From positions 1 through 64,000 of the forward strand of contig NIVC01000528.1 of the NCBI GenBank assembly GCA_002269645.1: a stretch of DNA of 64,000 nt. The letters run 5' to 3'. The notes under the pieces are model-generated. The model made no database searches. It was not told where the DNA came from and saw only the letters and a program-made list of their open reading frames with translations. Of the stretch, positions 9,001-43,215 are shown in pieces. A program made the translations under genes and the position numbers. Numbering within the stretch: the stretch's first letter is position 1; the number at the start of each line of letters is the position of its first letter. Source of the stretch: Macrostomum lignano. Taxonomy: Eukaryota.

Positions 9001-10682
9001 CTCAATGGGGCTGATATACACAGGTGCAAAGATGACGCAGAGCCCGCTACACTCAGCATCTCTAACTAGCCCTGTCGCTGTCAATATATAGAATTAAATG
9101 GAGAGCTTAGAAATGACACTCAATGGGGCTGATATACACAGGTGCAAAGATGACGCAGAGCCCGCTACTCTCAGCATCTCTAACTAGCCCTGTCGCTGTC
9201 AATATATAGAATTAAATGGAGAGCTTAGAAATGACACTCAATGGGGCTGATATACACAGGTGCAAAGATGACGCAGAGCCCGCTACTCTCAGCATCTCTA
9301 ACTAGCCCTGTCGCTGTCAATATATAGAATTAAATGGAGAGCTTAGAAATGACACTCAATGGGGCTGATATACACAGGTGCAAAGATGACGCAGAGCCCG
9401 CTACTCTCAGCATCTCTAACTAGCCCTGTCGCTGTCAATATATAGAATTAAATGGAGAGCTTAGAAATGACACTCAATGGGGCTGATATACACAGGTGCA
9501 AAGATGACGCAGAGCCCGCTACTCTCAGCATCTCTAACTAGCCCTGTCGCTGTCAATATATAGAATTAAATGGAGAGCTTAGAAATGACACTCAATGGGG
9601 CTGATATACGCAGGTGCAAAGATGACGCAGAGCCCGCTACTCTCAGCATCTCTAACTAGCCCTGTCGCTGTCAATATATAGAATTAAATGGAGAGCTTAG
9701 AAATGACACTCAATGGGGCTGATATACACAGGTGCAAAGATGACGCAGAGCCCGCTACTCTCAGCATCTCTAACTAGCCCTGTCGCTGTCAATATATAGA
9801 ATTAAATGGAGAGCTTAGAAATGACACTCAATGGGGCTGATATACACAGGTGCAAAGATGACGCAGAGCCCGCTACACTCAGCATCTCTAACTAGCCCTG
9901 TCGCTGTCAATATATAGAATTAAATGGAGAGCTTAGAAATGACACTCAATGGGGCTGATATACACAGGTGCAAAGATGACGCAGAGCCCGCTACACTCAG
10001 CATCTCTAACTAGCCCTGTCGCTGTCAATATATAGAATTAAATGGAGAGCTTAGAAATGACACTCAATGGGGCTGATATACACAGGTGCAAAGATGACGC
10101 AGAGCCCGCTACACTCAGCATCTCTAACTAGCCCTGTCGCTGTCAATATATAGAATTAAATGGAGAGCTTAGAAATGACACTCAATGGGGCTGATATACA
10201 CAGGTGCAAAGATGACGCAGAGCCCGCTAAACTCAGCATCTCTAACTAGCCCTGTCGCTGTCAATATATAGAATTAAATGGAGAGCTTAGAAATGACACT
10301 CAATGGGGCTGATATACACAGGTGCAAAGATGACGCAGAGCCCGCTACTCTCAGCATCTCTAACTAGCCCTGTCGCTGTCAATATATATAATTAAATGGA
10401 GAGCTTAGAAATGACACTCAATGGGGCTGATATACACAGGTGCAAAGATGACGCAGAGCCCGCTACTCTCAGCATCTCTAACTAGCCCTGTCGCTGTCAA
10501 TATATAGAATTAAATGGAGAGCTTAGAAATGACACTCAATGGGGCTGATATACACAGGTGCAAAGATGACGCAGAGCCCGCTACTCTCAGCATCTCTAAC
10601 TAGCCCTGTCGCTGTCAATATATAGAATTAAATGGAGAGCTTAGAAATGACACTCAATGGGGCTGATATACGCAGGTGCAAA
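1..10682. repeat. 118-bp tandem satellite, about 90 copies, truncated by the window start
   Basis: Unit TCTCTAACTAGCCCTGTCGCTGTCAATATATAGAATTAAATGGAGAGCTTAGAAATGACACTCAATGGGGCTGATATACACAGGTGCAAAGATGACGCAGAGCCCGCTACTCTCAGCA counted as 118 nt; the register shifts 2 nt per 120-nt line pair. Ends abruptly at ...GGTGCAAA near 10682. Confidence 0.99.
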
Positions 10683-11275: not shown

Positions 11276-12083
<808 letters not shown>

Positions 12084-15400: not shown

Positions 15401-18400
15401 TCTAACCATTTCTTTCTCCTTTAGGTATTGCGTTCTATTTCTTCCGACCAACTTTGCCATCCATGGACAAACAGTCGATGCCTTTGTGGGAACTCCATGC
15501 ACTAAGTTCGATGTCATCACAACAAAGCTGAAGAAACATTTGCAATGTGACTACCACAGAAGTGACTCTGTGATCAAAGCCGATGCCCTGCTATCTGGAA
15601 CGAATGTTGGCCACATGCTGGATGTCAGTCGCGCAAAGCTAGTGAAGGAAAATAGGGAAAGACTAAAACACGTAATTGAACCAATTGAATTTCTCGCTCG
15701 CTGTGGTCTGGCTTTTCGAGGACATCGTGACTGTGGACCTATTATCAGCCATTATCAGAGAAATTGCAGTGTGTAGATCTCGATCTTGTTGATTGTGTCA
15801 ATGAAATTAAGGCTGTCATCGATGTTCTTCGAGATCTCCGCTCTGATGATGGCCATGTCCGTTACAATAAGATATTCGATTCTGCTGAGAAAGCACTCGG
15901 CGAGCCACTACAAAAGCCTCGAACCAGTGCCAGGTGTCGACAGAAGCATCGTGCCAACCCCGATGTCTCCACGGCACGTGATTACTTCCGCATAGCAATG
16001 TACAATCCATTCCTGGATGGGATAATTGCTACTCTTGAGGAGCGCTTCAGTTCTCATGCGCAGCTTGCATTCCAGATGGCACGACTGCTTCCTCAGAGTG
16101 TTGTTGACGAAAGTTTTGACAGCGTGAAGAAATCGATAGAAATTTACATCGGACAGTTACGAGGATTAAGCTTTGTGGACGACATCGAGGCTGAATTCTT
16201 GCTATGGAAAAAGCGCTGGCAGAATGTCGATCAAAAGGACAGACCGCGAAGTGTGCTCGAGACGTTGGTAAATTCAGCTGTTAGCCTCCAGAGCTTTCCT
16301 AACATCCGGCTTCTACTACAAGTTCTGGCGACGATTCCCGTCACCACTGCAACTGCTGAGCGATCATTCAGTCAGCTTCGTCCACTGAAGTCGTACCTAC
16401 GTTCTACAATGGGACAGGAGCGACTGACAGGATTGGCCCAGCTTCTAATCCACAAGGACATGAAGCTGGACATTGATAAAGTTATCGATCAGTTCGTACA
16501 GAATGGGTCTCGTAGAATTGATCTGTAAGTACAAAGTTAAACTTTTAGACAGCAAGTTTTGATAGGCCTAGATTGAGTATGCGTAACATACATAACTAAT
16601 CACAATACGAGTAGAAGATTACATGTACATTAAATGTAATAATATAGGAACAAAAACCAAACTAATACAATAAGAGCTTGCGCATACTATTATATTCTCT
16701 ATTAATCAAAATGCTATAAGTGAGCTATACTTAGTATTCTACATTTCTTTCTACTTCTTGTATTGTCCCATATGATGTAAATGTGAAATTTGCTCTTTGA
16801 TATTGAATAAATAAAATCAATATGGAAGGTTGGTCACTGCGTTATTTGCTTGGAAAAGTGTTGGTGATTTGATAGAAGTTGAAATAATTTCGTTTTTTCT
16901 TGCTTTACGAATATGAATTACGAGTATATACGCATATACAAATATGTACACTAAAAGTCGTTTCATGAATTAAGCCAAGCCGGAAAAATGCACATGTAAT
17001 GAGTGAAAGTAGACTGATAACAGCTAACCGATACCCCCAAAAAAAAATCCTGGCTACGCCCCTGTGTTAAAGAACTGAGAAATTCCCATATCGCTAATGA
17101 ATTCTTTAGCGAGAACCGACCTCTAGCGTAGCGGTCGCGTATCGATACTTATCCTGGCCCGAGATCCTCACTCGGACCCGCTAATCGGATCAGCGGACCC
17201 CCTGCCAAAACCCAGAATCCTTGTTGCGTCCGCCATCAGCTGCTGTCAGAGTCGATCAGTTTGAGTCGAATGCGGAGCCGAGGCCTTTCTAACAAAATTG
17301 GCTTTGCATGTCCCGTCCGTGATGCATTCTGGAGCGCATCTGACTAGCAAGGTGCTTGGAAGCCCGATGGTTAAGGTGCATCGTGAGGTGTTTTAGTGGT
17401 TTAGCGCGGCGCTCTGATGTGCCAGCGGCCCAGGCTCGATTACAAGTGCAGTCGCATTAATTTGGCTCTGAGTTGGAATCTCGGCTTGGCTCTGCTCGTG
17501 CAATTAACGTCCTTGAGGGCCAAGCCCCAAGGCACAGTGGAGTGTACATGCCTGATGATAAATAAAGTCAGGGCTGCTGTACACTCCTGTGAGAGTGTGC
17601 CTGTGCGTATGACTGCGTACGTATCCGCGCGCCTGTGTGTCTGCTTAGGGGAGTCGGGGGAATGGGCAGCAATGCCTCTCAGCGGTTGTGTGACAATGTC
17701 GCTTAAAGTGCGCCAGGGTGCAAAACAGCCCGCCCTGCCTCTAATAAAAGATTTTTAGGGCCACTATAATCTCACTAATGGAAATGTAATTGAGTGCACG
17801 AGAATATCAGCTGTCTAGTCTGCTAGACTAGAATAATTTCTCTAACATAATTAAAAATATGTTACTGCAGTCCTACTTCCAGTAGCATCAGCCGCTAACA
17901 AAGTCAACCCCCCCTTTTCAGAAGAATTTTTTGTCTTTGAAATTTCTCCCTGTCGCAAAAAAGTGCCGGAAATCCGGCAGGCAAAATTTTCGTTTTTGAA
18001 GTTGACGAGCTCAAAGAGTTTTTTGCCAATAGGATGGCCTCACAGCGGGGCAGCTTTAATGAGGGCTGGCGCTGTATAAATCAGGTGACTCGGGGCTGCC
18101 GCTTCCAGCACTTGTGACAGCGAGTGTAGAAGATGCTGCAGCACCGTCAAGAAGCCGGCCGGAGCAGCTGCAGGCTGCTGAGCTGGCCTTCGTCCGAGTG
18201 CTCCGGAGCTCGTGAGATTCTTGGAAAAGCTGCTTGAGGACTTTACCGAGCTACAGGCTTACAGACTTACATGATTTTTAGTTAGAGATAGGGGGCTGTG
18301 TGTACTTAAAGTGACATTGTCACACAACCGCTGAGAGGCATTACCGCGATACGTACGCAGTCATGCACACAGGCACACACTCACACAGGAGTGTACAGAG

Positions 18401-24400: not shown

Positions 24401-27400
24401 AGGCTTCTGAATGAATTAATCGATTAGAAATGATTGAATCACACAATCAGTGGGTAAATTACAAGATAAGTGGGTGAATCACAAGATCAGTGGGTGAATC
24501 ACATAATCAGTGGGTGAATTACAAGCTCAGTGGGTGAATCGCACAATCAGTGGGTGAATCACACAATCAGTGGGTGAATCACACAATCAGTGGGTGAATC
24601 ACACAATCAGGGGTGAAGCACACAATCAGTGGGTGAAGCACACAATCAGTGGGTGAATCACAACCCCGTCCTCCAGACCCGGACGGCGACAGCCGCTCGC
24701 CCCTGCTGAACCGGAGCGAGTCGTTCTGCTTGCCGGTGGAGGACGACCTGGGCTTGTCCGAGCGCCTGCACTCGATTGGCCGGCGGCCGGGGCCCAATAG
24801 CGGCGGCGGCTGCCCGGCTGTCCGACCTGCCACCTCCTCCAGCGGCTTTGGCCGGGGCGGCGGCAGCTTCCGCTCGGTGCGGGCCTTTAAATCGCTGGAC
24901 ACGGACCGACGTTCGGGCGGCAAAGCGGAAAGATTCAACTCCATGGAGCTGCAGCAGCAGCAGCAGCAGCCGGTGGAGCTGCTAGAGACTGCGAATCACT
25001 GCGACACCAGCGACATCGGATGCCAGCAGCAAGAGCAGCAGCAGACGCCTCACCTGCCCGTGTCCGTTTCGACTTCGTTTGCTGGCGGCGGCAGTAAGCG
25101 GTGGCCGAGCTTCCGAGCTAAGCTCGTCGGCAGGTTCGGCTCGGTGCGCCAGCCGCGAAATTCCCAGCATCAGCAGCAGCAGCAGCAGCGCCGCGGTCAC
25201 CATCACTCGCTGGGAGGCGGAACCAGCGAGCCGCTGATTGCTCCGCTGGAGACCGACGGAGAAAGCGGCTCGGCCAGGCAAGGCGCGGACACAAGCACGG
25301 TGGACATGGGGGCCGACCAGCAGCAGCAGCAGAGCACGTCCAGCTACCTGAAGGAGCAGTTCTTCGCCTTTTTCCAGCCGTCTGACAACAAGCTGGCAAT
25401 GAAACTGTTCGGCAACAAGAACGCGCTGTTGAAGGAGAAGCGGCGTCAGCAGCAGTCTGGGAAGTGGATTATTCATCCGTGCAGCAACTTCAGGTGCGTC
25501 GGGGGACTCGATGGAGAGGGAGGGAGGGACCATACTAGCTAACCAGGCATTATAGTAGATGTCTCATCAAAGGACCTGACTTACAGTAAGTCTGCTTACA
25601 TCAGGAGATTACGAGCGTATGTGAATGGACAGTGACACGGAGGCCAAACGGTAATTCTTAGAAAAAATGACCTTTGCAACCCGGAAGCCCAGAACTGGGA
25701 TTCGACGTTGCAGAAGCAATTAACGGCGGCAAAAAGCGGTTCAATTCGTTGTGTTTATGCTTTAGCTCCAGAATGTCACATTTCTGCCCTTGATTCGTAC
25801 AGACAAAGCTGCGACACCGGGCCGCGCAATTATAAATCTATACGCTCGTAGAAAAATATTCCCAGATATTTTTTTCGATTTCAAGGGAAATGGCAGTCGA
25901 GGTATTATAGCCGGATTGTAAATCCCGGATTGTTTCAACTTTCACGGTGCACCGAGCTCGCTGCATTTACAATGCGCAAAGAAGTGCAAAAGATGTTCGT
26001 TCGTTCGTGTCAATCACTGCCCCAGGACCTCAATCAAAAGCTAGTAGACCTTGACCTTAAATAACGACTTTGTAATTAACCATGACAATTTTCGTCAAGC
26101 ATACTATCACTTTGACCTTGAAGAGTAAAGGAGCGTAGCCGAGGTATCTTACAACATGGACAAAGGTTTACATGGCTGGCAAGGTTGACGTTAGGGCATG
26201 GATTGAGCAGACCTGGAGTTCGGGACAGAACTAGCTCGTGGGTGTGACGCCAGAGCCTCAAATCTACGCCAGAGCCTACAAGCCTACAAAAGGTACAGAG
26301 GACCGGGCAATAGCGAGCTTATTTAAAGGTTTAATCACCAGACTATTTGACTATCATACTTGTGCAGATTTTGAGAGTTCGATAAAGTGCCTGATGGAAG
26401 GTTGGGCTGCAGTGTGTTCTCTAGACACACAGGTTCAGACGATATGTCAGGGGGAATTCCCGTCACATTCGTAAACCTACACCGCTTTAAAGGCACTTAC
26501 CTCCCATTAGTGATGGAAGCAGGCCCTTAAATATGCATCTGGTAGAAACAATTTGCATTACGGATTGCAAGAGAGCAGAAGGCAATGTTTTTTCGAAGAT
26601 TATCTTGAGGAATGCGCGGACAGCAGCTGGTCAGGCGGATGCCCCGTCAGTCAGTCAAAGCTTTCGTGGCGGCAACAATCAACAGGTTTGATAGACTTGC
26701 AAGAAATTTAATTTCGCGTCAACACTTCAGATTCTATTGGGACCTGCTGATGCTGGTGATGCTTATCACCAATCTGGTGGTCCTGCCCGTGGCCATCTCC
26801 TTCTTCAATGACGATCTGAGCGCCCACTGGATCATCTTCAACTGCGTCTCGGACACCATCTTCCTCGGCGACATCGCTGTTAACTTCCGCACAGGCAAGC
26901 GGGTAGCGTACGGGCTCAAGCTGATCAATCACGCCCAGTAATTGTATCGATCTGAGGCTGTTCCCGGGGACTTAAGTGTGGGGAAATTCTCCCAGGAGGG
27001 AAACTCGAGAAAAAAATGAGTCCAACTCCGGCACTTTCCTTAAGCCGGTCCGCTGAGTGCCAAATGAAGCGGCTCCGAGCTCCCACTGCCTCCGCTCCTC
27101 TCCACAAGCTCCTTGGTCAGTTTGCCTCGGCCAGATAGATTGGCCAATTGCACTTTTTCACCAGTTTGCAACGCTCTTCCCGCCGCACCGCCCGCTCTTC
27201 ACCAGGCGTCATCACCAACGACTTTGCCGAGGAGATCATCCTGGATCCCAAGATGATCGCCCAGCACTACCTCAAGTCGTGGTTCTTCCTGGACCTGATC
27301 TCCTCCATCCCCATGGACTACATCTTCCTGGTGCTCAATCAGAGGAACAATGTCAGCCAGCTCGTGCATGCGGGTGAGAATCTGGCCTTGACAAGGACCA

Positions 27401-30400
27401 CAATTGTAGTTGTGAGGACGCAGCACCGCAAGGTCGTTGGGATATTTTCGGCGAAATTCCTATTCTCATACATAAAGCAAAAATAACTTTGAGTTTGTTA
27501 AATTTTGGGACTCGAGTCGAATTGTCATCTCTATCCCAACAACAACACCCCCTAACCAGGCCGAGCTCTCCGCATCCTGAGGCTGGCCAAGCTGCTCAGC
27601 CTGCTGCGCCTGCTGCGACTCTCGCGATTGGTCCGCTACGTCAGCCAATGGGAGGAGGTCAGTGCTATTGAGTAACTATGACGTATTATGTAATTATGTT
27701 TCGCGGACAAAAGCCTGCTTATTTTGAGACCGTAATCAAAGAGAATTATCCAGATCGCTCTAGGTGATTCGACGCAACTGTCACTCATGTAGTCAATCGT
27801 GATTTCTTTGAAACCGAATTTTCAGTTCTTTCAAATTGCCAGCAAGTGCTTCGGCATTATAAAACTCGTGCTCATCATGATGCTCTTGGGCCACTGGAAT
27901 GCCTGCTTCCAGTTCCTTATACCGTTCCTCAACGACTTCCCGGACGACTCTTGGGTGGCCAGGAGTGGCCTTAAGGTGATGCCGAGAATTGAAATTAGGA
28001 ATTCATAAGGTGGTGGCGTGCGCAGCTAACATGTACAGTTGAAGAACGCTTCACTTGCGATTCGTTTAAATGGTCTGGAGGCCGGGTTTTTCGCTCATTT
28101 GTCTCCACTTCTGCTTACTGAATTGTAAATGGGACAAGTCAGTGTTTTGACCAAGCTTGATTCAAAAGTTCATCGGGCTAAAGTTTGAAGAACTCTACCA
28201 CAGACCGGCAAGTAAACAGAGTTCCCGCGAATTCCGGATAATCCGCATGTTTTGAGTTTTTATAGGCGGGCAAAACAGCGCTAATCTGGGAGTTCCGCGC
28301 TCGCAGAACGCAGCTTTACTTGGCGGTTTGCAGACCTTTTTTCAAACTTTATCCAGAGATTTGGTGGATCAACCCCGGACAAAATACACAGACACACGCA
28401 CACACGCACGCTATAGCTCTGTTTGCAATTTGGAAGTCCAAAGACGGTGAAATGTTTTGCAATCGAATTTAGTACAAAAGAACTAAAAACTGTCTATCAA
28501 TCTATCCGATGCATTTAATAACGAAAAGCTTGTCCTCCAAGGCGATTCGCACGATTTGTGAGTGCAGCGTCACAATTCTACTTTAGCTGTAAATTCTAAA
28601 TTGATGGGTGGCGGCCCGCCGAGAGATTTTTATCGGCAGTTTTTGTCACTTGTGCTTTCTCGCTTATAGCTATAGTGTTGACCCGTCTCTGAATTGTGGG
28701 CTAACCAAGTCAATGTCGCTGCAGCCTTACTGTGCAACTATTTGTCAACCACCTGTAAGTTTTCAGCACCGACCCTATCGTGTTCATGATTAATAAATTT
28801 ATGTGACTGCCGCTTTCCTATTTGTCTAATACCTATTCATCGCACTTGAATTACGGGTAGATGAAAATGCTAAGATAGTCGTGATGACCGCACAGCTAGT
28901 TTTGTAAAGCAAGTTCATCATGCGATCATGCTGAGTTTCATCAGCGACCACCGTGGGATCAAAAACTGCTGTACCTGCGTGGGGCAAAGGATATCTCACT
29001 GTTCCGTCGCTCAACTTATCCTCATTTGCAGCTCCTGAGTGCGGCCAATAAGTTCATGGGGATTTTCAACTTAGTCCTCCTAATGATGCTGCTGGGCCAC
29101 TGGAATGCCTGCCTGCAGTACCTGATCCCCTTTCTGCAGGACTTTCCCGAACAGTCCTGGGTGGTCAGGTGCAACTTGAAGGTGAAGCTGGTCTGAGCGA
29201 ATGCGACAGGCGATCCCACTAGCACTTAGCGTTTGTTGATCCCAAAAGTTAAAAAAAGTTAGTCTGTATTGTGCTCAGACACAATCGATCGCATGAAGGT
29301 TGAGATTGAATAACTGAGAGATTGTTTTGCACGCCGCAGTTGCCATGCAGCTGTGTCACTCCAACCCGACTTACTGTTCATATTGTTGTTGTTGAGATCC
29401 GTTCTCACTTGTCGCGGGCATGACGCTCTGCACAAAATCGAACCCCATTTGCAGCTGCTAAACGTGGCGTCGGTGTTCATGCGTGTTGTGAACCTGGTCT
29501 GCTTGATGCTGCTGCTGGCGCACTGGAATGGCTGCCTGCAGTTTCTCGTGCCGTCGATTCAAGACTTTCCCAAAGACTCCTGGGTTAGGAAGCTGAACAT
29601 CCAGGTATCAGGCTCTGGTAGCTGCCCATGCTTGGCGAGTTTTTTAGTTTTAACTTTTTATAATATTCATACTTTTACACATTTACAGATTTTACAGATT
29701 TTATTAACTTTACTAAACCCGAAGAAGCCAGTTTTTTGCTCGTGACGGGGGGCTGCAGGTGTTGGAAGCGAAGAGGCATATTAAGAACATTCCGTCGACC
29801 TCTGGGCACACACGTGAATACACGCGGACGCAAGCACTCAGCTCGCACAGGGATGCGTGTACATCTAAAATGACTTGTCATCACCAGGCATGTACACGCC
29901 ATGGGCCCTTAGGGGTTGCAGGTCAAAGCATCAAAGCATCGATAGTGGGTACTCTGCCATTGACAATCGCCTACTAGTATGTACGAGCTGTGCCAATTCA
30001 TGCTACCGGTAGATACTACTCACCTGGAATTTTACTTTTTTGCACCTCTTTAGCATGATATCTGCAATATCTTTCTGAAGCGCCGCCCTCCTGTTTATGT
30101 GCTACTTTTGATTTTTACTGTTGTGGACGTGGACTATCTTTTAACTGCAATGTCGATCCACGCTAAATTGGCTCACTTTTAAAATGCGAAATTCAAAACT
30201 GCACCAGCATCTCCAAACGATTTGATATGCAACATATTAACCTACAGAATTACATCATCGATAGTAAATATTCAATCTGGTCTAGTGGCCTCCTCTTTAG
30301 CATTAAACTGACCATACATGTGGGCTCCAACTTCCAACTCTCTCCAACTCCTATCCCGCACACACCCCACCCCTCCAACTCCTGCCCCGCGCATCCCCCA

Positions 30401-33400
30401 CCCCCAGCTCCTACTGCACATACACCTACACCCACCCCTCCAACTCTTACCCCGCACATACCCCACCCCTCCAACTCCTGCCCCGCGCAAACTGCCTCCC
30501 CTCCAACTCCTACCCCGCACATACCCCACCCCTCCAACTCCTGCCCCACACATACCCCACCCCTCCAACTCCTGCCCCGCGCATCCACCACCCCCAGCTC
30601 CTACTGCACATACACCTACACCCACCCCTCCAAATCCTGCCCCGCGCATCCCCCACCCCCAGCTCCTACTGCACATACACCTACACCCACCCCTCCAAAT
30701 CCTGTCCCGCACAAACCCCCACCCACCCAAATCCTACCACGCACAAACCTTTCTTTTAACTGGCTGTTAAGCTGCACAACCAAATTCCTTAGTTTGAATC
30801 AGGTTGAAAAAAACAGATCGAATTCCCACAGTGTAGTTATTTAACACCGCAATCGCAATTAGGCCATCTTTTATTACTAAAACTAGGTACCGCAATGCTA
30901 CTAAACTGACTTATCTAAGTAGAACCATCTACGGTTCAAAACTCTAAAATCCTATCTCAAACGTTTATCCTCAGGAGGCGCACTGGTTCCGGCAGTACAC
31001 CTGGGCCCTGTTCAAAGCCATGAGTCACATGCTGAGCATTGGCTACGGCCAGCACCCGCCAACCAGCATCAGCGAGGCCTGGATCACCATCGTCAGCATG
31101 ATGACCGGCTCATCCTGCTACGCGCTTTTCGTGGGCCACGCCGCCGCCCTCATCCAGAGCTTCGATACGTCGAAGCGTCTCTATAGAGAAAAGGTGAGTG
31201 TCCCGCTGGAGCTGCTGCGCTGCTCACTGAGCCTCTAGGAGGATCTCCAAGGCTAACTGGCTGCTTGAGTGAGTGACACCCACGCATCAGGCATGCACAG
31301 GCACTGAGGCAACAAGACATGCCAACTCAAACAGGTCATACGTGGCAGCTCAAGCCCTTTGTTAAATAAACTCCTGTATGTCTGAATCACGAAATACTCC
31401 AGTTGCACATAGTCCGGACACCTAATTAATTACCAATTTAGACACTCAGAATTCTGGAAAAACAGATACCTAAATACATACCTAAATATTTAATGGATAT
31501 ATTATACTTAAATACCTAGATACCCTTGAAACCAAGATACATAGATACCCACATACCCACATATCCGATCACTCAGATACCAAGATACAGATACCCACAT
31601 ACGCACATACCCACATACCCACATACACTCATACCCTCATACCCACATACCCACATACATACATACATACATACCCTCATACCCACATACCCACATACCC
31701 ACATACCCACATACCCACATACCCACATACCCACATACCCACATACCCACATTTCCACATACCCATACATCCAGATACCCATATACCCTCATACCCATAT
31801 ATCCACATACCCACATACCCACATACCCACATACCCATACATCCACATACCCACATACCCACATACCCACATACCCATATATCCACATACCCACATACCC
31901 TCATACATACATACACACATACATACCCACATACCCTCATACCCACATACCCACATACCCACATGCCCACATACCCACATACCCACATACCCATACATCC
32001 AGATACCCATATACCCTCATACCCATTCCGTTCCTAATCTCTCCGCTCGCCAACCGCAGTTCAAGCAAGTGGAAGAGTACATGGCCTACCGCAAGCTGCC
32101 CAGGGCGCTCAGGCAGCGCATAGCCAACTACTACGAGCACAGGTACCAGGGCAAGATGTTCAACGAGAGCGAAATTCTCAGTGAGCTGTCCGAGTGCCTC
32201 AGAGAGGTAAGCAGCCTGGGCGAGGGCTCGGTTTGAGAACACTTGTCAAAGTCGCTTAAGCCGCTTGAGTTTTCGGTTCATTAGCTCCTGCCTGTAGCCA
32301 ACTATCTGCCTGCTCAAGCTGAAGTTCATGATTTAGCATCTTCTCTAACTTCGTCAGAGCATCGCATGCCGGTTGAGCGGCTCACGTGACCTCTTTTAAT
32401 TAATTGCAAGCGGCATTTAATTGGCTGCAAGATAGCAGGTGTTGTAGCCACACCAGAGTGTGTTGACGATCTGCCGAATGACTGCCACTTCATAAAGTGC
32501 ACTGATTGCTAAAAATCCCCTATTACAGTTCCTCTATTTGAAGTACATGAAGAAAAAATATTTTTTTCATTAAGTCGTCATAAATTTAGCTTTCTCCCTG
32601 TAAATCTGTTTTTAGATCTGTTACGGTCTAAACGATTGCGTTTTTAATTTTAAAAAAGAGATTGGCGGTGGAATGGAGGCATACAGAAGAGAGGGGGAGA
32701 ATGGAGAGAGGGGAGATAGAGGAGGGGGAGCTGGGGGAGAGGAGGGGGTGAGAAGATGGAGGAGGGAGAGGCATGATTTCAGTTGTACTTTTAACTTTCC
32801 CGCCCGCAGCAAATCATCAACTACAACTGCCGCGCCCTGGTGGCAGCCGTGCCCTTCTTCACCTACGCCGACCAGGACTTTGTCTCCGAGGTCGTCACCC
32901 GGCTGAAATACGAAGTTTTCCAACCTGGCGACCTCATTATCAAGGAGGGCACCATCGGGACGAAGATGTACTTTATCCAGGAGGGCATCGTGGACATCAT
33001 CACCAAGGACGGAGAGGTGGCAACGAGCCTATCGGACGGGTCCTACTTTGGCGGTGAGCGAGTGGGAATGGCGTGCTTCTTGGCTTAGTGAGATATGATT
33101 GAGCACTTGTCGGCCTTTGAGCAAATGAACAACGTTCGAGTGGAACTGAGAGCCTATCAATAGGTTAGAGGCGTCAGTGCCAGAGTCCCGTGGCCACATT
33201 AGTTTAAAGTTGGAGCACAGGCATTTGCCTGGAACAGGTAGGTTAGTGGAGAATCATTAGATTAGAACAGGTGAGGCTGCAGTCTAAAAACAGGTGAACA
33301 GTCATTAAGATAAAAACAGGTGAGACTGCAGTCTAATAACAGGTGAACAGTCATTAAGATAAGAACAGGTGAGACTGCAGTCTAATAACAGGTGAACAGT

Positions 33401-36400
33401 CATTAAGATAAGAACAGGAGAGACTGCAGTCTAATAACAGGTGAACAGTCATTAAGATAAAAACAGGTGAGACTGCAGTCTAATAACAGGTGAACAGTCA
33501 TTAAGATAAGAACAGGAGAGGCTGCAGTCTAATAACAGGTGAACAGTCATTAAGATAAGAACAGGAGAGGCTGCAGTCTAATAACAGGTGAACAGTCATT
33601 AAGATAAGAACAGGAGAGGCTGCAGTCTAATAACAGGTGAACAGTCATTAAGATAAGAACAGGAGAGACTGCAGTCTAATAACAGGTGAACAGTCATTAA
33701 GATAAGAACAGGAGAGGCTGCAGTCTAATAACAGGTGAACAGTCATTAAGATAAGAACAGGAGAGACTGCAGTCTAATAACAGGTGAACAGTCATTAAGA
33801 TAAGAACAGGAGAGGCTGCAGTCTAATAACAGGTGAACAGTCATTAAGATAAGAACAGGAGAGGCTGCAGTCTAAAAACAGGTGAACAGTCATTAAGATA
33901 AGAACAGGTGAGGCTGCAGTCTAATAACAGGTGAACAGTCATTAAGATAAGAACAGGAGAGGCTGCAGTTTAATAACAGGTGAACAGTCATAAGTATCGC
34001 AGTTAGAGAATGCAGTAATTTATATCTTCTCTAGGCTTTCATAACGAAATTCAATACCTTGGTTGTACGAAATGAAGGCTGCCTGTTTGATGCAATCTCG
34101 CTACATAATTTTTAGTTGGATCAGACGATTCCCTCATTACTGCATTTTCGCACCACGGAGAAGAAGTTGCCAACTGATAGATTTGGATATGACTACTCGT
34201 GTATGCTTGCCCTCATTTGTCTGGGTTGCCTTACCGTCAGAGGCTTGATTTGACTTGTCGATTACAGAAGTTTCGAAAGCAGAGCAGGTGGATAGAAGCA
34301 GATGAATCAAGATTGCCTCAAAATATTATAGCAAGGTATAGAAACTTACCTGAAGTATGCCTAACCAAGGCCTGAAACTGACCTGAAGTATGCCTGAAAC
34401 AAGGCCTGAAACTGACCTGAAGAATGCCTGAAACAAGGCCTGAAACTGACCTGAAGTATGCCTGAAACAAGGCTTGAAACTTACCTGAAGTATGCCTGAC
34501 AAAGGCCTGAAACTTACCTGAAGTATGCCTAACCAAGGCCTGAAACTGACCTGAAGTACGCCTGAAACAAGGCTTGAAACTTACCTGAAGTATGCCTAAC
34601 CAAGGCTTGAAACTTACCTGAAGTATGCCTAACCAAGACCTGAAACTGACCTGAAGTATGCCTGAAACGAGGCCTGAATGTAATTTGATTCGAATGTGAA
34701 CTTGATTGCCAAGCGAACTATACACGATGCATTCCCTAAGGCCGAATGCACCGCATTCCATATCGAAAATGTCCTTCGCTCAGTTCGTACCTGATCCCCG
34801 ATCGATCATTCGCTAAGAAGTTTCTTTCGATGCCTACGCAGCTTCTGTGCAGTCTGACGGATCCCTGGCAATTTCGACCAGATTCAGCTCGACCGGAATG
34901 CGGAATAGCGGAAGAAATCCTCATTCTGTTTACCCATCCGCCCGGTACTTGATTCCTGACCATCTGGAATTATCGCACTCTGCCTGCATTCCAGACCCAC
35001 TTCAGCGAAATGGAAAAGAATTGAATTTCAACGCACTAATTTTGTATAAAGTGGTCATTTTGATTCTCTAAAATGATTCGGTGCCAAGTTTGCTAAGCAA
35101 CCAGGACTATTGAGGGTGACCTAAAGCTAGGTCAAGGAGAAATGATCTTCATCTCCTAGTATACCAGTAAATTTTAACTTTTTGTCAAACATGCAGCTGA
35201 ATCGGTGTATCAATGTACGAGCGTACTAACGTCTTTCCTTCCTTCTTTTCAAAGTAGAAGCCAAACTTTTACTTAATTGTGTCTAACTGGGGTCCTGGGC
35301 GTCTAATTGGGCCCCTGGGTGTCAAACTGGGCCCAGCTGGATGTCTAATTGGGCCCCTGGGTGTCTAATTGGGCCCCTGGGTGTCTAACTGGGCCCCTGG
35401 GTGTCTAATTGGGTCCTGGGTGTCTAATTGGGGTCCGTGGTGTCTAACTGAAGTCCTGGGTGTCTAATTGGGCCCTGGGTGTCTAATTCGGGTCCTGGGT
35501 GTCTAATTGAACCAGGGATGTTTAATCAAGGCCTTGAGTGTCTAAAATTAACTGGGGTCCTGTATGTCTAATTGCGTCATGGGTGTCTAATTGGGTCATG
35601 GATGTCTAATCTAGGCCCTGAGAGTCTAAAATTAACGTCCTATATGTATAATTGGGGTCCTGGGTGTCTAACTGAAGTCCTGGGTGTCTAATTGGGGTCC
35701 TGGGTGTCTAACTGAAGTCCTGGGTGTCTAATTGGGGTCCTGGGTGCCTAACTGAAGTCCTGGGTGTCTAATTGGGGTCCTGGGTGTCTAATCGAGGTCA
35801 TGGGTGTCTAATTGGAGTGCTAGGTGTCTAATTAAAGTCCTGAGTGTCAAATTGAAATCCTGGGTGTCTAATTGGGGTCATTATATGTCTAATTTAGGTC
35901 CTGGGTATCCAATTGAGGTCCTACATGTAGGTGTCTAATCGGGTCCTGAAAATTGAATTAGATTTCTAGGCGTCTAATTCGGTTCCTGACATTACATTGG
36001 AGTGCCCTCAATGTTCCATTGGAGTTCCCAGTTGCGTGTCCATTTGTGGTCATACTGTTAAACGTTTTATTTGGCTCTTGGACATAGTAATAAATTCCTG
36101 GACATCTACTTAGGTTCATTCAGTTTGAATACCAAAATGGGGGGGGGCGTAGCCTAGTGGTTTAGCGCGGCGCTCTCATGTGCCAGCGTCCCAGGCTCGA
36201 TTCCAAGTGCAGTCAAATTAATTTGGGGCTAAATCGGAATTCAGCTTGTGCAATTAACGGCCTTGAGAGCCAACCTCCAAGGCACAGTGAAGTGTACATG
36301 CGATAAATAAAGTCAGGGCCGCTGTGCACTCCTGTGTGAGTGTGTGCCTGCGTACCTATCCGCGCGCTTGTGTGCCTGGTCAGGGGAGTCGGCGGAATGG

Positions 36401-37029
36401 GCAGTAATGCTTTTCACCGGTTGTGTGACAATGTCGCTTAAAGTGCGCCAGGGGGCACAGAGTCGTCTCCTTGCCTCTATCTATATATACCGAAATGGTG
36501 GTGCTAAAATTGGTTCAGGACGTTGTTATTCATTCTGCACTCCTCAGAAATCTGCCTGCTCACCAACGCCCGCCGCGTGGCCAGCGTCCGAGCCGAGACC
36601 TACTGCAACCTGTACTCGCTGGAGCGGGAGAACTTCCTGTCCGTGCTGGACAATTACCCGCTGATGCGCCGCACCATGGAGTCCGTGGCGGCCGAGCGGC
36701 TCAGCAAGATCGGCCAGAACCCGCAGCTGGTGAGCAACCGGGCTGATCTCAAGGAGGATCTCAACCTGGTCAAGGAGATCGTCAACCAGTCTGGTCCGCC
36801 AAACCAGCCCGAACACTCGGACGCGTCTTCAGTCGACGATCTTCCTGGCGACGGAGCCTCTGGGAGCGCCGCTCAGCAGCAGCTGCAGCCGACGGCGCCG
36901 TCGCCATCTTCGCCTCAGCCGGCGTCATCTGGCGGCGGGGATCGGCGCCTGTCAGCGGTGAAGCTCGGACTGCAGCGCCTCGGCCTGGTGCGGCCGAAAC
37001 TCAGTCCGTCGGACGAGTCGGCTCTGTGA
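12349..37029 (+). CDS. HCN: Hyperpolarization-activated cyclic-nucleotide-gated (HCN/Ih) channel, spliced: 12349-12424, 24677-25493, 26731-26894, 27206-27373, 27560-27657, [one of 27826-27975 / 29032-29181 / 29455-29604], 30975-31193, 32060-32206, 32810-33053, 36548-37029
   Basis: HCN domain ([26 protein letters not shown]), S1-S6, S4 [26 protein letters not shown], pore [10 protein letters not shown]-linker, [22 protein letters not shown]. All junction phases are compatible; total 2565 nt = 854 aa + stop. Confidence 0.95.
12536..13140. repeat. 15-bp minisatellite (CCCTCCACATCTTTA)n
   Basis: About 40 degenerate copies; source of the false LPSTS ORF. Confidence 0.97.
13425..13530. repeat. 35-bp tandem repeat (GAGTGATGAGAGCAGAGATGGAAGATAAGACAAGA), about 3 copies
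   Basis: Direct reading. Confidence 0.9.
14695..16528 (+). pseudogene. hAT (ZMYM1/DUF4371-like) transposase remnant lacking the central catalytic region
   Basis: Exon 14695-15224 spliced (AA|GTAAGT..TTTAG|G) to 15425 gives GGVFCKYCVLF...H.QCDYH (TTF-type Zn finger) and [14 protein letters not shown]. It then jumps out of frame near 15740 to [14 protein letters not shown] and the hAT dimerisation motif [28 protein letters not shown]. Confidence 0.88.
15313..15372. mobile_element. 60-bp micro-MITE nested in the transposase intron
   Basis: 16-bp TIR CACAGATACTAGAACA / TGTTCTAGTATCTGTG; 8-bp TSD GTATGGAC at 15305-15312 and 15373-15380. Confidence 0.85.
17394..17745 (+). mobile_element. tRNA-derived SINE, copy 1 (5' slightly truncated)
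   Basis: TAGTGGTTTAGCGCGG...GGCTCGATTAC head; body highly similar to the copies at 18285 and 36143. Confidence 0.88.
18285..18580 (-). mobile_element. tRNA-derived SINE, copy 2 (inverted relative to copy 1)
   Basis: Reverse complement reads GGGGGCGTAGCCTAGTGG...CCAGGCTCGATTCC (A/B boxes) followed by the same body. Confidence 0.88.
19176..20168. repeat. Compound minisatellite: 18/22-bp (GACAGTGAGTGAATCATG) changing to 17-bp (CAGTCTGAGTGAATCAT)
   Basis: Direct reading; shared GAGTGAATCAT core. Confidence 0.97.
20847..21110. repeat. 25-bp minisatellite (GGATTAGCTAGTCATAAATCCATGA)
   Basis: ATTAG recurs at 20951, 20976, 21001, 21026. Confidence 0.95.
21110..21540. repeat. Purine-rich degenerate repeat, about 22 bp (GACAAGATAGAGACAGGAGATA)
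   Basis: Direct reading. Confidence 0.93.
22061..22710. repeat. 38-bp minisatellite (TTTTACCATAGACGAATCTTCTGACGATTAGAAAGTCA), about 17 copies
   Basis: Direct reading. Confidence 0.97.
23370..23945. repeat. GA-rich low-complexity tract
   Basis: GAGAGAGGGAGACT-like repeats; false LSLS ORFs on the minus strand. Confidence 0.93.
24440..24662. repeat. 20-bp minisatellite (CACAATCAGTGGGTGAATCA) abutting the exon-2 acceptor
   Basis: Last unit ends about 14 nt before the AG at 24675-24676. Confidence 0.93.
24677..25493 (+). CDS. HCN: HCN exon 2: polyQ-rich N-terminus and HCN domain
   Basis: CTCCAG| acceptor; ends CSNF-R AG|GTGCGT. Confidence 0.9.
26731..26894 (+). CDS. HCN: HCN exon 3 (S1-S2)
   Basis: TTCAG|[12 protein letters not shown]...IAVNFRT G|GCAAGC (GC donor). 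Confidence 0.93.
27206..27373 (+). CDS. HCN: HCN exon 4 (S2-S3 loop, S3)
   Basis: ACCAG|[43 protein letters not shown]...HA G|GTGAGA. Confidence 0.95.
27560..27657 (+). CDS. HCN: HCN exon 5 (S4 voltage sensor)
   Basis: ACCAG|[34 protein letters not shown]|GTCAGT. Confidence 0.96.
27826..27975 (+). CDS. HCN: HCN alternative S5 exon 6a ([50 protein letters not shown])
   Basis: TTTCAG| ... AAG|GTGATG, 150 nt, phase 0-0, open. Confidence 0.88.
29032..29181 (+). CDS. HCN: HCN alternative S5 exon 6b ([50 protein letters not shown])
   Basis: TTTGCAG| ... AAG|GTGAAG, 150 nt, phase 0-0, open; absent from the ORF track. Confidence 0.88.
29455..29604 (+). CDS. HCN: HCN alternative S5 exon 6c, canonical-like ([50 protein letters not shown])
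   Basis: TTTGCAG| ... CAG|GTATCA, 150 nt, phase 0-0; closest to the usual invertebrate Ih [22 protein letters not shown]. Confidence 0.92.
29770..29920 (-). mobile_element. Divergent SINE fragment sharing the central core
   Basis: Reverse complement CAACCCCTAAGG...GTGTACATGCCTGGTGATGACAAGTC resembles CAAGCCCCAAGG...GTGTACATGCCTGATGATAAATAAAGTC. Confidence 0.5.
30340..30740. repeat. C-rich degenerate tandem repeat
   Basis: CCCCACCCCTCCAACTCCT-like units. Confidence 0.9.
30975..31193 (+). CDS. HCN: HCN exon 7 (pore helix, filter, S6)
   Basis: CTCAG|[29 protein letters not shown]...[14 protein letters not shown]|GTGAGT. Confidence 0.96.
31520..32025. repeat. 8-bp repeat (CCCACATA)n
   Basis: Direct reading; runs up to the exon-8 polypyrimidine tract. 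Confidence 0.95.
32060..32206 (+). CDS. HCN: HCN exon 8 (C-linker)
   Basis: CGCAG|[14 protein letters not shown]...SECLRE|GTAAGC. Confidence 0.96.
32810..33053 (+). CDS. HCN: HCN exon 9 (C-linker/CNBD)
   Basis: CGCAG|[17 protein letters not shown]...LSDGSYFG G|GTGAGC. Confidence 0.96.
33266..33990. repeat. 49-bp minisatellite (AACAGGAGAGGCTGCAGTCTAATAACAGGTGAACAGTCATTAAGATAAG), about 15 copies
   Basis: Period 49 (AAGATAAG at 33601 and 33650). Confidence 0.96.
34345..34675. repeat. 33/34-bp minisatellite (CCTGAAGTATGCCTGAAACAAGGCCTGAAACTGA)
   Basis: Direct reading. Confidence 0.94.
35280..35990. repeat. 20-bp degenerate minisatellite (GTGTCTAATTGGGGTCCTGG)
   Basis: Direct reading. Confidence 0.93.
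36143..36480 (+). mobile_element. tRNA-derived SINE, copy 3 (full head)
   Basis: GGGGGCGTAGCCTAGTGGTTTAGCGCGG (A box) ... GGCTCGATTCC (B box), same body. Confidence 0.88.
36548..37029 (+). CDS. HCN: HCN last exon (phosphate-binding cassette, C-terminus)
   Basis: CTCAG|[26 protein letters not shown]...SAL*. Confidence 0.95.
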
Positions 37030-38623: not shown

Positions 38624-38766
38624 GCAGCTCAGCGGTGAACGCACCCGACTCCACGACCCCCCCCCCTAGTTCGATTCCGTGCGTTGTCTTTCGGGAGGTT
38701 TTCGTGCGATTTATACTTATGAGGGTCAAGCCCCTAAGGTACGAGTGTACATGTTTAACGATTAGC
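38624..38766 (+). mobile_element. Second tRNA-SINE family: different head, shared core
   Basis: AGCTCAGCGG (A box) near 38626, GTTCGATTCC (B box) at 38669-38678, core GAGGGTCAAGCCCCTAAGG..GTGTACATG at 38721-38753. Confidence 0.6.
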
Positions 38767-39268
38767 GTCTACAAGCATTGGTCACCCTGCACACCGTCTA
38801 CAAGCATTGGTCACCCTGCACACCGTCTACAAGCATTGGTCACCCTGCACACCGTCTACAAGCATTGGTCACCCTGCACACCGTCTACAAGCATTGGTCA
38901 CCCTGCACACCGTCTACAAGCATTGGTCACCCTGCACACCGTCTACAAGCATTGGTCACCCTGCACACCGTCTACAAGCATTGGTCACCCTGCACACCGT
39001 CTACAAGCATTGGTCACCCTGCACACCGTCTACAAGCATTGGTCACCCTGCACACCGTCTACAAGCATTGGTCACCCTGCACACCGTCTACAAGCATTGG
39101 TCACCCTGCACACCGTCTACAAGCATTGGTCACCCTGCACACCGTCTACAAGCATTGGTCACCCTGCACACCGTCTACAAGCATTGGTCACCCTGCACAC
39201 CGTCTACAAGCATTGGTCACCCTGCACACCGTCTACAAGCATTGGTCATCCTGCACACCGTCTACAAG
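38767..39268. repeat. 29-bp minisatellite (GTCTACAAGCATTGGTCACCCTGCACACC), 17 copies plus a partial
   Basis: (39260-38767)/29 = 17; almost invariant. Confidence 0.98.
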
Positions 39269-41421: not shown

Positions 41422-43215
41422 CTACACCTTGCTGTCTGCAGAGCTGCTGCAGTCCTGGCCGATGCTATCAGCAGCCAGACTACCGACCGATGTTGTCGTA
41501 GACCATGTCTCCTGCCTTTGATCAGCAGTTCTGGCGGCGCAAGAGCCTCGAAGTCCAATGTCGATGAGGTTGTACAGCAGCTCAAGCAGTTCGAACAGCG
41601 TCAGCAGTGAACAGCCGAGGAACAGTCCCAGGATTCCGCCAACGTCGGACACAAATTCTAAGAAAGAGTATGATCGAGACATGATCACAGTAGGGCCCAT
41701 GATTTTTCCGGTGCGAATTGTCACCTTGGTGATGACCCGAGAGGCGTAGGATTCCAGCATGGCCTTGCCGGCCGCTGTGACGTTCGATTCGATCGCGGTG
41801 AACATCGCGGCCAAAATGGTGTATGCTGGAAACGGTAGATCGCGCATCGCGAGCATTTTCTCCTGAGCAATTCGGAGGAAGATCCGGTGAAGCACCGTAT
41901 CCTGGATTCCATTGAAAGTCGGCCACTTGCTAGAGTAGGCCCTGGCGTTGTAAATCAGCTTCGAGCAGGGCCTGCGCCGGTTGCACACGGACTGGACGTG
42001 GTTGAGGTCGTAGGGGAAATTTCCACCGCGCATTGCTCGACTGGTCTGAAGGAAGGCGGCTCGCTTTGCCGAGGAGGCACCGCGTCCAAGGTACTCGGAG
42101 GCGTCAAAGCAGCGGCTGAGGTTGCTGAACTCCGCCAGCCAGGGGGCAGCGTTGTCGATGCAGGAGGCATTCTGAAAGCGCAGGCGCTCTTTAAACTCGA
42201 TCCAACAGAAGTCGTCGTTGTATTCGTAGAGGTCCGCCTGCATGCTGTACGGGTCTATCACAGAGACTTTGGGTGGCTTTTCAGTGCAGGGAATCCCGTC
42301 TTTCATGATTTCCAAACTCATGTCTGTTAGCACTTGGTAGTCTCTGCCAGGCTCCAGGTAAATATGAGCCGCGTTGTCAGTGGGATAGTGACCCGGCGCC
42401 ACTAAGCTTAACCGCATTGAGGCGCCGCTTCTGTAAGCCATGCCGCTCTGAATGTCCCAGATTGGGAACTTCACACCGCCCGATATGTTCGCGTATGGCA
42501 CGGATTTCAGCAGCTCATTTGTAGGGTAGGTCCCGTTGATAGCCGAGTCATAGAACAGGTAGAGGGTGAAGAAGTTCCACGAGTCTTTCATGAAATTGCG
42601 ACGCTCTTTCTTTAGGTTGATGAAAATGCAATTCAGAAGGGCCGGGCTGTGGAACCTGATCAACGAACCTGTCTTGTTAATGGAAACCTCCTGCTCAACT
42701 TCATCTGAGAAGATGTCATTGTACAGAGTCTGCTGAGCCTGGTGTCCGAACGCATCACTGAGCAGTCTGTATGGCATGGTGCTCAACAGTATGCGAATGA
42801 AAGTTTCCGCATCTCCGTCGTTTTTCGGGGTAAAATTGAAAGTCCTGGCAATCCCGTCGATATAGCTGTTCACCAGCAGAGCGGTGGCATTGTCTATGAA
42901 GTTTCCGTAGCTTCCAGATATAATTGGCTGTGGGCAGATGTACAAGTCTGGAAAAACCATGCCGATGGAGTCCTCCTGTATAGTTGTGGTCTCAGGCAGC
43001 TGCAGCAGCTTTAAGATGAAGCCGCGAGCCTGCAAGCTGAAGATGGTAGCCATGGCCAGGAACAGCACTAGCCAGGTGAGCTTCACGTAAACTGGCCGGT
43101 TGCCGACCAGGCGAGACAGGCCGTGGGTGCTTGTCTCTGCTGCCGACGCGCAGATGACATCGATAATCGACTTCGATGCCGGTTTCTTTTCATCCGTGCC
43201 GTCTTTCAAAGCCAT
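41422..43215 (-). CDS. DEG/ENaC (amiloride-sensitive, ASIC/FaNaC-like superfamily) channel subunit, intronless, 597 aa
   Basis: Pre-TM1 ETSTHGLSRL (HG motif), TM1 KLTWLVLFLAMATIFSLQ, FPDLYICP, YSSKWP, TM2 FVSDVGGILGLFLGCSLLTLFELLE (G-x-S filter). Confidence 0.92.
   Translation of the reverse strand: MALKDGTDEKKPASKSIIDVICASAAETSTHGLSRLVGNRPVYVKLTWLVLFLAMATIFSLQARGFILKLLQLPETTTIQEDSIGMVFPDLYICPQPIISGSYGNFIDNATALLVNSYIDGIARTFNFTPKNDGDAETFIRILLSTMPYRLLSDAFGHQAQQTLYNDIFSDEVEQEVSINKTGSLIRFHSPALLNCIFINLKKERRNFMKDSWNFFTLYLFYDSAINGTYPTNELLKSVPYANISGGVKFPIWDIQSGMAYRSGASMRLSLVAPGHYPTDNAAHIYLEPGRDYQVLTDMSLEIMKDGIPCTEKPPKVSVIDPYSMQADLYEYNDDFCWIEFKERLRFQNASCIDNAAPWLAEFSNLSRCFDASEYLGRGASSAKRAAFLQTSRAMRGGNFPYDLNHVQSVCNRRRPCSKLIYNARAYSSKWPTFNGIQDTVLHRIFLRIAQEKMLAMRDLPFPAYTILAAMFTAIESNVTAAGKAMLESYASRVITKVTIRTGKIMGPTVIMSRSYSFLEFVSDVGGILGLFLGCSLLTLFELLELLYNLIDIGLRGSCAARTADQRQETWSTTTSVGSLAADSIGQDCSSSADSKV

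Follow-up and report, generated by a model that had tools for sequence, protein, structure and literature searches.

We analyzed the first 64,000 nucleotides of the forward strand of contig NIVC01000528.1 (GenBank assembly GCA_002269645.1; hereafter, the window) from the free-living flatworm Macrostomum lignano. The window holds a predicted ion channel gene with three related versions of one exon arranged in tandem, here termed cassettes 6a, 6b, and 6c (Table 1). Judged by its encoded protein, this is an HCN channel gene, of the family underlying the pacemaker current (Ih). The spliced open reading frame (ORF) contains all the parts of the family, namely an HCN N-terminal domain, six transmembrane segments with a long and regularly charged S4, and a C-linker with a cyclic nucleotide-binding domain (CNBD), and the frame is open throughout with any single cassette. 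A HMMER search with the whole S4-to-C-linker query returned HCN4 (6gyn, E 5.2e-82) and HCN1 (5u6o, E 1.4e-79) as the top PDB matches. The UniProt model P0138, whose residues are identical to those encoded in the window, has the domains PF08412, PF00520, and PF00027, and its cluster mates P0394 and P0395 likewise match the window-encoded sequences residue for residue. The selectivity filter, MLSIGYGQ, conforms to the C/S-I-G-Y-G pattern. Comparison with a paralog suggests at least one more 5' exon, which makes the cassette exon 6, in line with the numbering of the first-pass annotation of this DNA. The donor of the S1 exon (26894-26896) is apparently GC rather than GT (ACAG/gcaagc), since the frame into the next exon (NFRTG/VITND) works with that site only.

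Table 1. Predicted HCN gene of the window and its exons
Feature	Position	Strand	Details
HCN/Ih channel gene, M. lignano	24637..37029	+	exon model, open frames, splice sites; 5' end incomplete
N-terminal exon	ends 25493	+	
S1 exon	26731-26894	+	apparent GC donor
S2-S3 exon	27206-27373	+	
Constant S4 exon	27560..27657	+	ends phase 0
Cassette 6a, K/G type	27826-27975	+	Lys AAG 27844-27846; Gly GGC 27853-27855; Lys 27862-27864 (hHCN1 N300 position)
Cassette 6b, K/G type	29032-29181	+	Lys AAG 29050-29052; Gly GGG 29059-29061
Cassette 6c, Arg type, like other animals	29455-29604	+	Val GTG 29473-29475; Arg CGT 29482-29484
Constant exon: pore helix, SIGYG filter, S6, C-linker start	30975..31193	+	Asp of QSFD within, 31164-31166
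C-linker exon	32060-32206	+	
First CNBD exon	32810-33053	+	
Last coding exon: remaining CNBD, C-terminus, stop codon	36548..37029	+	

Each cassette is exactly 150 nt long and in phase 0, has a GT donor and an AG acceptor preceded by a stretch rich in pyrimidines, and encodes the distal S4-S5 linker, the whole of S5, and the start of the turret. The three are clearly homologous, with a resemblance far above chance: tblastn comparisons gave E values of 1.8e-20 (6a-6b), 1.4e-18 (6b-6c), and 6.6e-15 (6a-6c), and the amino-acid identities over the 50 residues are 64%, 56%, and 44%, respectively. At the DNA level, the cassettes form a three-copy direct repeat of 143 nt with 69-71% identity (cassette-to-cassette, 57-68%). 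There are exactly three copies in the window, as the next-best tblastn match has an E value of ~0.1; neither a fourth cassette nor other duplicated exons were detected in the 64 kb. Translation confirmed the first-pass reading of cassette positions 5-10 as ASKCFG (6a), ANKFMG (6b), and ASVFMR (6c); the interval annotated there ended at 29181 and thus spanned 6a and 6b only, with 6c just beyond it.

These tandem homologous exons agree in length, phase, and the protein segment that they encode and have separate splice sites, and we propose that they are mutually exclusive versions of one exon. Transcript use was judged from GenBank gene models of paralog copies; the Mlig_3_7 annotation was built on RNA sequencing (RNA-seq) and a de novo transcriptome (PMC5730564). 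One such model, PAA85143.1, runs from S4 through 6a and the pore exon to the stop codon at full length, using 6a only. Another, PAA78447.1, from a near-identical second copy of the paralog, joins S4 directly to 6c and uses 6c only. The UniProt models read differently and could be taken to mean that the cassettes are included together, yielding a channel with repeated S5 segments: A0A1I8GHE7, A0A1I8HJ31, and A0A1I8I1D7 (P0138, P0394, and P0395) carry 6a, a truncated 6b, and 6c in tandem, P0139 and P0140 also join two or three cassettes in frame, and a length of 150 nt, being a multiple of three, permits it. These models, however, rest on an older assembly, and one of them starts 6b internally, whereas the RNA-seq-based GenBank models carry one cassette each; moreover, additional S5 helices would leave the pore loop and S6 with inverted topology. 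We therefore find joint inclusion barely credible, and the tandem-cassette models are almost certainly prediction artefacts.

How a single cassette would be selected is less apparent from the locus. A search for docking and selector RNA pairings yielded only short, imperfect inverted repeats, and no conserved intronic blocks were found between the window copy and its paralog. The inter-cassette introns (1056 and 273 nt) are too long for steric hindrance. With GT-AG at all cassette sites and a length of 150 nt, which keeps the frame, neither incompatible sites nor frame disruption with nonsense-mediated decay enforces a choice. The cluster thus presents the architecture of mutually exclusive exons, with no sign of these mechanisms for exclusivity.

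Comparison with the paralog indicates that all three cassettes are under strong purifying selection as coding sequence. Between the window copy and the paralog locus L004, the non-synonymous and synonymous divergences (pN and pS) were 0.038 and 0.76 for 6a, 0.118 and 0.78 for 6b, and 0.052 and 0.45 for 6c, compared with 0 and 0.57 for the pore exon, which is 100% identical in amino acids. The introns are unalignable past a few bases at the exon edges, and synonymous sites are near saturation; it is the combination of a pN far below pS with such introns that argues for selection. This bears on the idea that 6a, 6b, or both are decaying, unused duplicates, dead copies in which the change to Gly would be neutral. 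No 6b-only transcript exists among the public gene models, and the public models of the window copy are artefactual, as such decay would allow. Yet the cassettes are open, exactly 150 nt long, and equipped with their AG and GT sites in the window copy as well as at the paralogous L004 and L005, their non-synonymous divergence lies 6 to 20 times below the synonymous, with introns diverged beyond alignment, and the third paralog, P0140, also retains 6a and 6b. For 6a, its use in a full-length RNA-based model contradicts the idea directly. Overall, we consider decay very improbable.

The first-pass annotation had placed the Gly of 6a and 6b at the position of a conserved gating Arg, R339 of HCN2, and this equivalence holds. 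HMMER puts the 6a Gly opposite the Arg of LASAVVR, which counting along the human HCN1 (hHCN1) chain identifies as R297; the offset of 42 to mouse HCN2 (E282/E324, Y289/Y331, D401/D443) converts R297 to R339. Aligned against both the HCN1 and the HCN4 structures, the Gly stays at this position. A basic residue is thus present in the first turn of S5 in 6c (Arg) and absent from 6a and 6b (Gly). The post-S6 Asp of QSFD (codon GAT) was also correctly described as kept. It lies in the constant pore exon, 104 residues after cassette position 10 in all isoforms, the same ungapped spacing as in the R297-D401, R339-D443, and spHCN R367-D471 pairs (numbering cross-checked with PMC3434101). Cassette 6c therefore resembles HCN2, HCN1, and spHCN in its Arg, unlike 6a, 6b, and all recovered parasitic-flatworm HCNs, which are naturally Gly. 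The invertebrate linkers are four residues shorter than those of vertebrates, and HCN2 Y331, another closure residue, has no counterpart in them.

A further difference, overlooked in the first pass, concerns cassette position 13, which is Lys in 6a and Asn in 6b, 6c, and most HCNs (hHCN1 N300, spHCN N370). A contact between W281 and N300 has been reported to determine coupling polarity (PMC10317503). Two M. lignano paralogs retain this Lys in 6a, as part of a conserved 6a hallmark, K-C-[FL]-G-I-[IV]-K, and one Spirometra HCN gene has it too (GISKLL).

The Arg and the Asp have been assigned a joint role in closing the channel. According to a review (PMC3439648), closing of HCN2 depends on E324, Y331, and R339, as an alanine scan revealed; mutating them raises the minimum open probability, and a bridge from R339 to D443 was proposed subsequently. 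From simulations and further papers comes the view that an R339-D443 salt bridge between subunits locks HCN2 in its closed state (PMC9085832), and R297-D401 has been described likewise in HCN1 (PMC11189445). Simulations also show R297 in state-dependent contact with lipid headgroups, E282, and H392 (PMC10317503). A bridge at the same pair of positions in the bacterial channel SthK, a distant relative of the cyclic nucleotide-gated type and in this unlike flatworm HCN, is present when closed and broken when open, adjoins a lipid site, and is released by phosphatidic acid, as summarized in PMC10317503. Two human HCN1 epilepsy variants affect the same two positions, although these are disease alleles and not natural isoforms. 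According to a 2026 preprint, D401H promotes opening but R297T, a loss-of-function variant with lowered current, does not, and its authors doubt the salt bridge in HCN1 (bioRxiv 10.64898/2026.03.18.712601). The variants show that the effect of losing the Arg is context-dependent. The first-pass statement that the role of R339-D443 is established accordingly stands for HCN2 (PMC3439648, PMC9085832) and fails as a general rule, the HCN1 variant data being contrary.

The Gly extends well beyond M. lignano. Every HCN sequence that we recovered from parasitic flatworms reads A[SNG]KF[MI]G, then ..LVL..GHWNAC. The sample covered trematodes (Schistosoma, Trichobilharzia, Fasciola, Opisthorchis, Clonorchis, Paragonimus, and Echinostoma), cestodes (Echinococcus, Taenia, Hymenolepis, Spirometra, Schistocephalus, and Mesocestoides), and the monogenean Cichlidogyrus; full-length relatives came up with a 740-aa query, the short-query protein searches returning short entries only. 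The sequences form three to four paralog groups per species, all of the Lys/Gly (K/G) class, so called for the residues at positions 7 and 10. At the genomic level, a single K/G exon lies between the S4 and pore exons in each of three loci, from Trichobilharzia (L001), Spirometra (L002), and Echinococcus (L003), and searches at E up to 0.01-1 detected no Arg-type exon in them. Planarian, polyclad, and catenulid HCNs were not recovered in the protein searches, and the data for free-living flatworms are those of Macrostomum only.

Across animals, the Gly stands out. Among 150 distinct cassettes, position 10 is Arg in 113, Lys in 4 (all chelicerates), and Gly in 25, including 23 of the flatworm type, and all 23 of these share K7, G10, L16, and A26. 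The arthropod cassettes surveyed all keep the Arg, or Lys in chelicerates. When clusters at 50% identity were scanned without bias through one representative each, seven flatworm clusters proved to be the only ones with a canonical-looking HCN and no basic residue at the Arg site; the remaining exceptions were unnamed transcripts and divergent paralogs from ticks, a sponge, and a chimaera. On these comparisons, the K/G class is old, flatworm-wide, and selected, and it is the sole version seen in parasitic flatworms. Since all recovered parasitic-flatworm paralogs have the Gly and no Arg-type exon was found, Gly-type channels must be the working Ih channels in these animals.

The cassette tree (neighbor-joining, 50 residues) placed all K/G cassettes in one clade with 88% bootstrap support, and with 60% when positions 7 and 10 were removed. 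The first-pass view of 6a and 6b as sister duplicates is thus borne out insofar as both belong to one class apart from 6c. Their exclusive sisterhood is not: 6a and 6b alone group at 10%, and the clade includes all parasitic-flatworm cassettes. We also asked of the tree whether 6a and 6b duplicated before or after the divergence from parasitic flatworms; 50 residues are too few for this, all alternatives within the clade receiving 8-25%. Of the three M. lignano cassettes, 6b is the nearest to six of the eight parasitic-flatworm cassettes compared (58-76% identity). The 6a/6b/6c order is shared by the paralog loci L004 and L005 and by the P0139 and P0140 models, and orthologous cassettes in the paralog are 94% (6a), 84% (6b), and 90% (6c) identical, compared with 64% between 6a and 6b, which dates the 6a/6b split before the M. 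lignano paralogs. L004 and L005 are near-identical copies on different contigs of GCA_002269645.1, differing by 0-2 nt per exon, which fits the recent duplication known for this M. lignano line. The paralog that they represent is old relative to the window copy (pS 0.4-0.8).

The history first suggested for the Lys at position 7, in which 6a and 6b added a Lys as a deliberate relocation of charge, is not supported. The Lys coexists with the Arg in molluscs and annelids (A[GS]KFMR; AGKFMR in molluscs, ASKFMR in Capitella, AEKFMR in Helobdella), and among the cassettes only 6c is without it; elsewhere, the position holds Met (a nemertean), Val (a brachiopod and insects), or Ala (vertebrates). 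Since Lys and Arg occur together in two other phyla, the most economical view is that the Lys predates the loss of the Arg. The simplest history would place it in the lophotrochozoan ancestor, followed by loss of the Arg in the K/G class and loss of the Lys in 6c. As for its surroundings, the position corresponds to spHCN A364, at which Cd2+ bridges form with C-linker residues 472, 476, and 482 of the neighboring subunit, next to D471 (PMC3434101). A milder version of the relocation idea stands: with this contact site and its invariance in all 23 flatworm Gly cassettes, the Lys appears well placed to take over part of the contact made by the Arg.

Covariation between the two sites of the lock points in the same direction without singling out one cause. 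An acidic residue occupies the Asp site in 67 of the 72 cluster representatives with a basic residue at the Arg site, and in 7 of the 14 with a non-basic one (Fisher p 3e-4, without phylogenetic correction); the flatworm class retains the Asp in all seven of its clusters. The Asp also contacts H392, Q398, and R404 (PMC10317503). The covariation and the kept Asp would fit compensation by the Lys, and would fit other roles of the Asp equally well.

We propose the following explanation. Cassette 6c is the ordinary animal version, with the Arg that in HCN2 salt-bridges the post-S6 Asp between subunits and steadies the closed gate. Cassettes 6a and 6b represent the K/G class (Lys7, Gly10, Leu16, and Ala26), in which the Arg was lost and the lophotrochozoan Lys kept. 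Choosing a K/G cassette would then remove the Arg-Asp lock and lower or re-tune the stability of the closed state, with closure not abolished. The expected signs are a positive shift of the half-activation voltage (V1/2), faster opening, and a somewhat larger voltage-independent component, and/or a changed sensitivity to anionic lipids or cyclic AMP (cAMP). One helical turn earlier, at a position with known contacts to the neighboring C-linker, the Lys probably supplies part of the lost electrostatic contact, and 6a would differ further through its Lys at the N300 position. Because the lock joins neighboring subunits, co-assembly of isoforms could set anywhere from zero to four locks per tetramer and so grade the effect. 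We consider this account as a whole, exclusive cassettes with a lock-free K/G class that re-tunes closed-state stability, to be probable. We are highly confident of its structural and evolutionary part, and for its functional part the odds seem to us about even.

Several observations weigh against this explanation. Loss of the Arg need not destabilize closure, as the HCN1 R297T data indicate (bioRxiv 10.64898/2026.03.18.712601), and the presence of the Lys alongside the Arg in other phyla means that its conservation is no proof of compensation. The cassettes differ at 18-28 of their 50 residues, and differences between isoforms may stem from other S5 or turret residues. Besides the missing 6b-only transcript, there is no single-cassette model for the window copy, whose sole public models (UniProt A0A1I8GHE7 and relatives) are those joining cassettes in tandem. 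No published recording from any flatworm HCN was found in the literature. Nor did structure prediction help: AlphaFold2 monomer models of the 6b and 6c cores, built from a 35-sequence alignment, reached a mean predicted local distance difference test (pLDDT) score of 53 and a predicted template-modeling (pTM) score of 0.27-0.28, too poor to compare Gly with Arg, and the helix that they predict over the linker and S5 (residues 142-178) does not differ between the two.

A stronger functional reading came with the first-pass annotation: channels with 6a or 6b cannot fully close and act as a splice-selected leak, with 6c as the true pacemaker. It agrees with the raised minimum open probability of HCN2 R339 mutants, as related in the review PMC3439648, and with the locking role of the R339-D443 bridge (PMC9085832), and a natural precedent exists in the Ciona intestinalis duplicate ciHCNb, which "fails to close completely" (PMC3487815), albeit through gene duplication and not exon choice. 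The distribution of the Gly argues otherwise, however. Parasitic flatworms are Gly-only in all three to four HCN paralog groups recovered, and several HCN genes with intact S4 charges and CNBDs are unlikely to be kept merely as leaks. In addition, the conserved Lys may stand in for part of the contact (PMC3434101), and R297T does not promote opening of HCN1 (bioRxiv 10.64898/2026.03.18.712601). With whole lineages depending on Gly-type HCNs and a human variant that does not open the channel, the leak reading is weakened, and we judge it improbable.

At the other extreme, all isoforms might gate alike and the cassettes might differ in regulation by phosphatidic acid or phosphatidylinositol 4,5-bisphosphate (PIP2), assembly preference, trafficking, auxiliary-subunit binding, or pharmacology. 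Many S5 and turret residues differ besides positions 7 and 10, L16 and A26 being among those diagnostic of the class; the state-dependent lipid contact of R297 and the phosphatidic acid site of SthK (PMC10317503) lie at the Arg position; and R297T chiefly lowers current (bioRxiv 10.64898/2026.03.18.712601). Positions 10 and 13 are, on the other hand, experimentally linked to closed-state stability and coupling polarity (PMC3439648, PMC10317503), and a change of lipid regulation at the Arg site would itself work through gating. We regard identical gating as unlikely, though less so than a leak.

The explanation that we favor can also be taken further. Flatworms may have swapped the Arg-Asp lock for a Gly and an obligatory Lys contacting the neighbor's C-linker; Macrostomum, with Arg and Lys/Gly S5 exons in every HCN paralog, might then set the number of locks per tetramer by exon choice and heteromers, giving a graded, cell-specific set-point for Ih, with parasitic flatworms wholly lock-free. 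We advance this extended version only tentatively and think it rather doubtful.

In part, these results build on established ground: splice tuning of invertebrate Ih channels and the Arg-Asp lock were already known, and the flatworm K/G class and the proposed three-cassette choice of S5 appear to be new. The Drosophila Ih channel DMIH, for example, is reportedly diversified by alternative splicing. Splice-based diversity of gating is likewise ascribed to arthropod Ih channels such as Panulirus PIIH (Ouyang et al. 2007, in the citation of PMC3487815). The flatworm cluster differs from these in consisting of three homologous whole-S5 exons, and in a choice that removes the Arg of the lock; we found no report of either. 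A literature search on flatworm HCN channels and their gating residues, on mutually exclusive HCN exons, and on a three-member S5 exon cluster in any HCN gene likewise turned up no relevant paper. Two variations of HCN models in other animals may be mentioned here: the Ixodes scapularis model P0158 has two identical S5 cassette copies in tandem, and mollusc and crustacean isoforms vary just upstream of the cassette (QWEE / LLKSKK / RRRKPG; EVYVSS).

The Arg-Asp pair is one of the few residue-level accounts of HCN closure, and its generality is disputed by the human-variant data. Flatworm HCNs, which are 70-80% identical to the animal core and lack the Arg while retaining the Asp, offer a natural test of the lock. 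In M. lignano, the Arg and Gly versions occur in one protein background and differ by one 50-residue exon, a clean natural experiment. The finding also corrects the public protein models for the M. lignano HCN genes, and it shows that schistosome and tapeworm HCN channels differ consistently from host channels at a gating site. If the lock-free design is real, parasitic flatworms would have HCNs unlike those of the host in mechanism and perhaps also in pharmacology.

Some minor features of the gene and its surroundings complete the description of the window. The filter reads SIGYGQ instead of the usual CIGYGR; its Ser is common to other flatworm HCNs, and among the sequences compared, the Gln-His-Pro after GYG occurs in M. 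lignano only. Downstream, a 597-aa uninterrupted ORF on the reverse strand (41422-43215) matches the DEG/ENaC amiloride-sensitive sodium channel family (PF00858, E 6e-29) and lies tail-to-tail with the HCN gene, so that two ion-channel genes adjoin. Upstream, a hAT-family transposase remnant (Dimer_Tnp_hAT, E 6e-12) occupies 14683-16528 on the forward strand. A satellite with a 118-bp unit, repeated ~90 times at 99% matches, fills the start of the window (1-10682); next come arrays of (AGAT)n (11276-12082) and of a 15-bp unit (12528-13157). Further micro- and minisatellite arrays with 8- to 65-bp units crowd the HCN introns and 3' flank (30342-30749, 31545-32025, 33254-33991, 34341-34678, 35279-35922, and 38766-39268), and several of them yield long spurious open frames.

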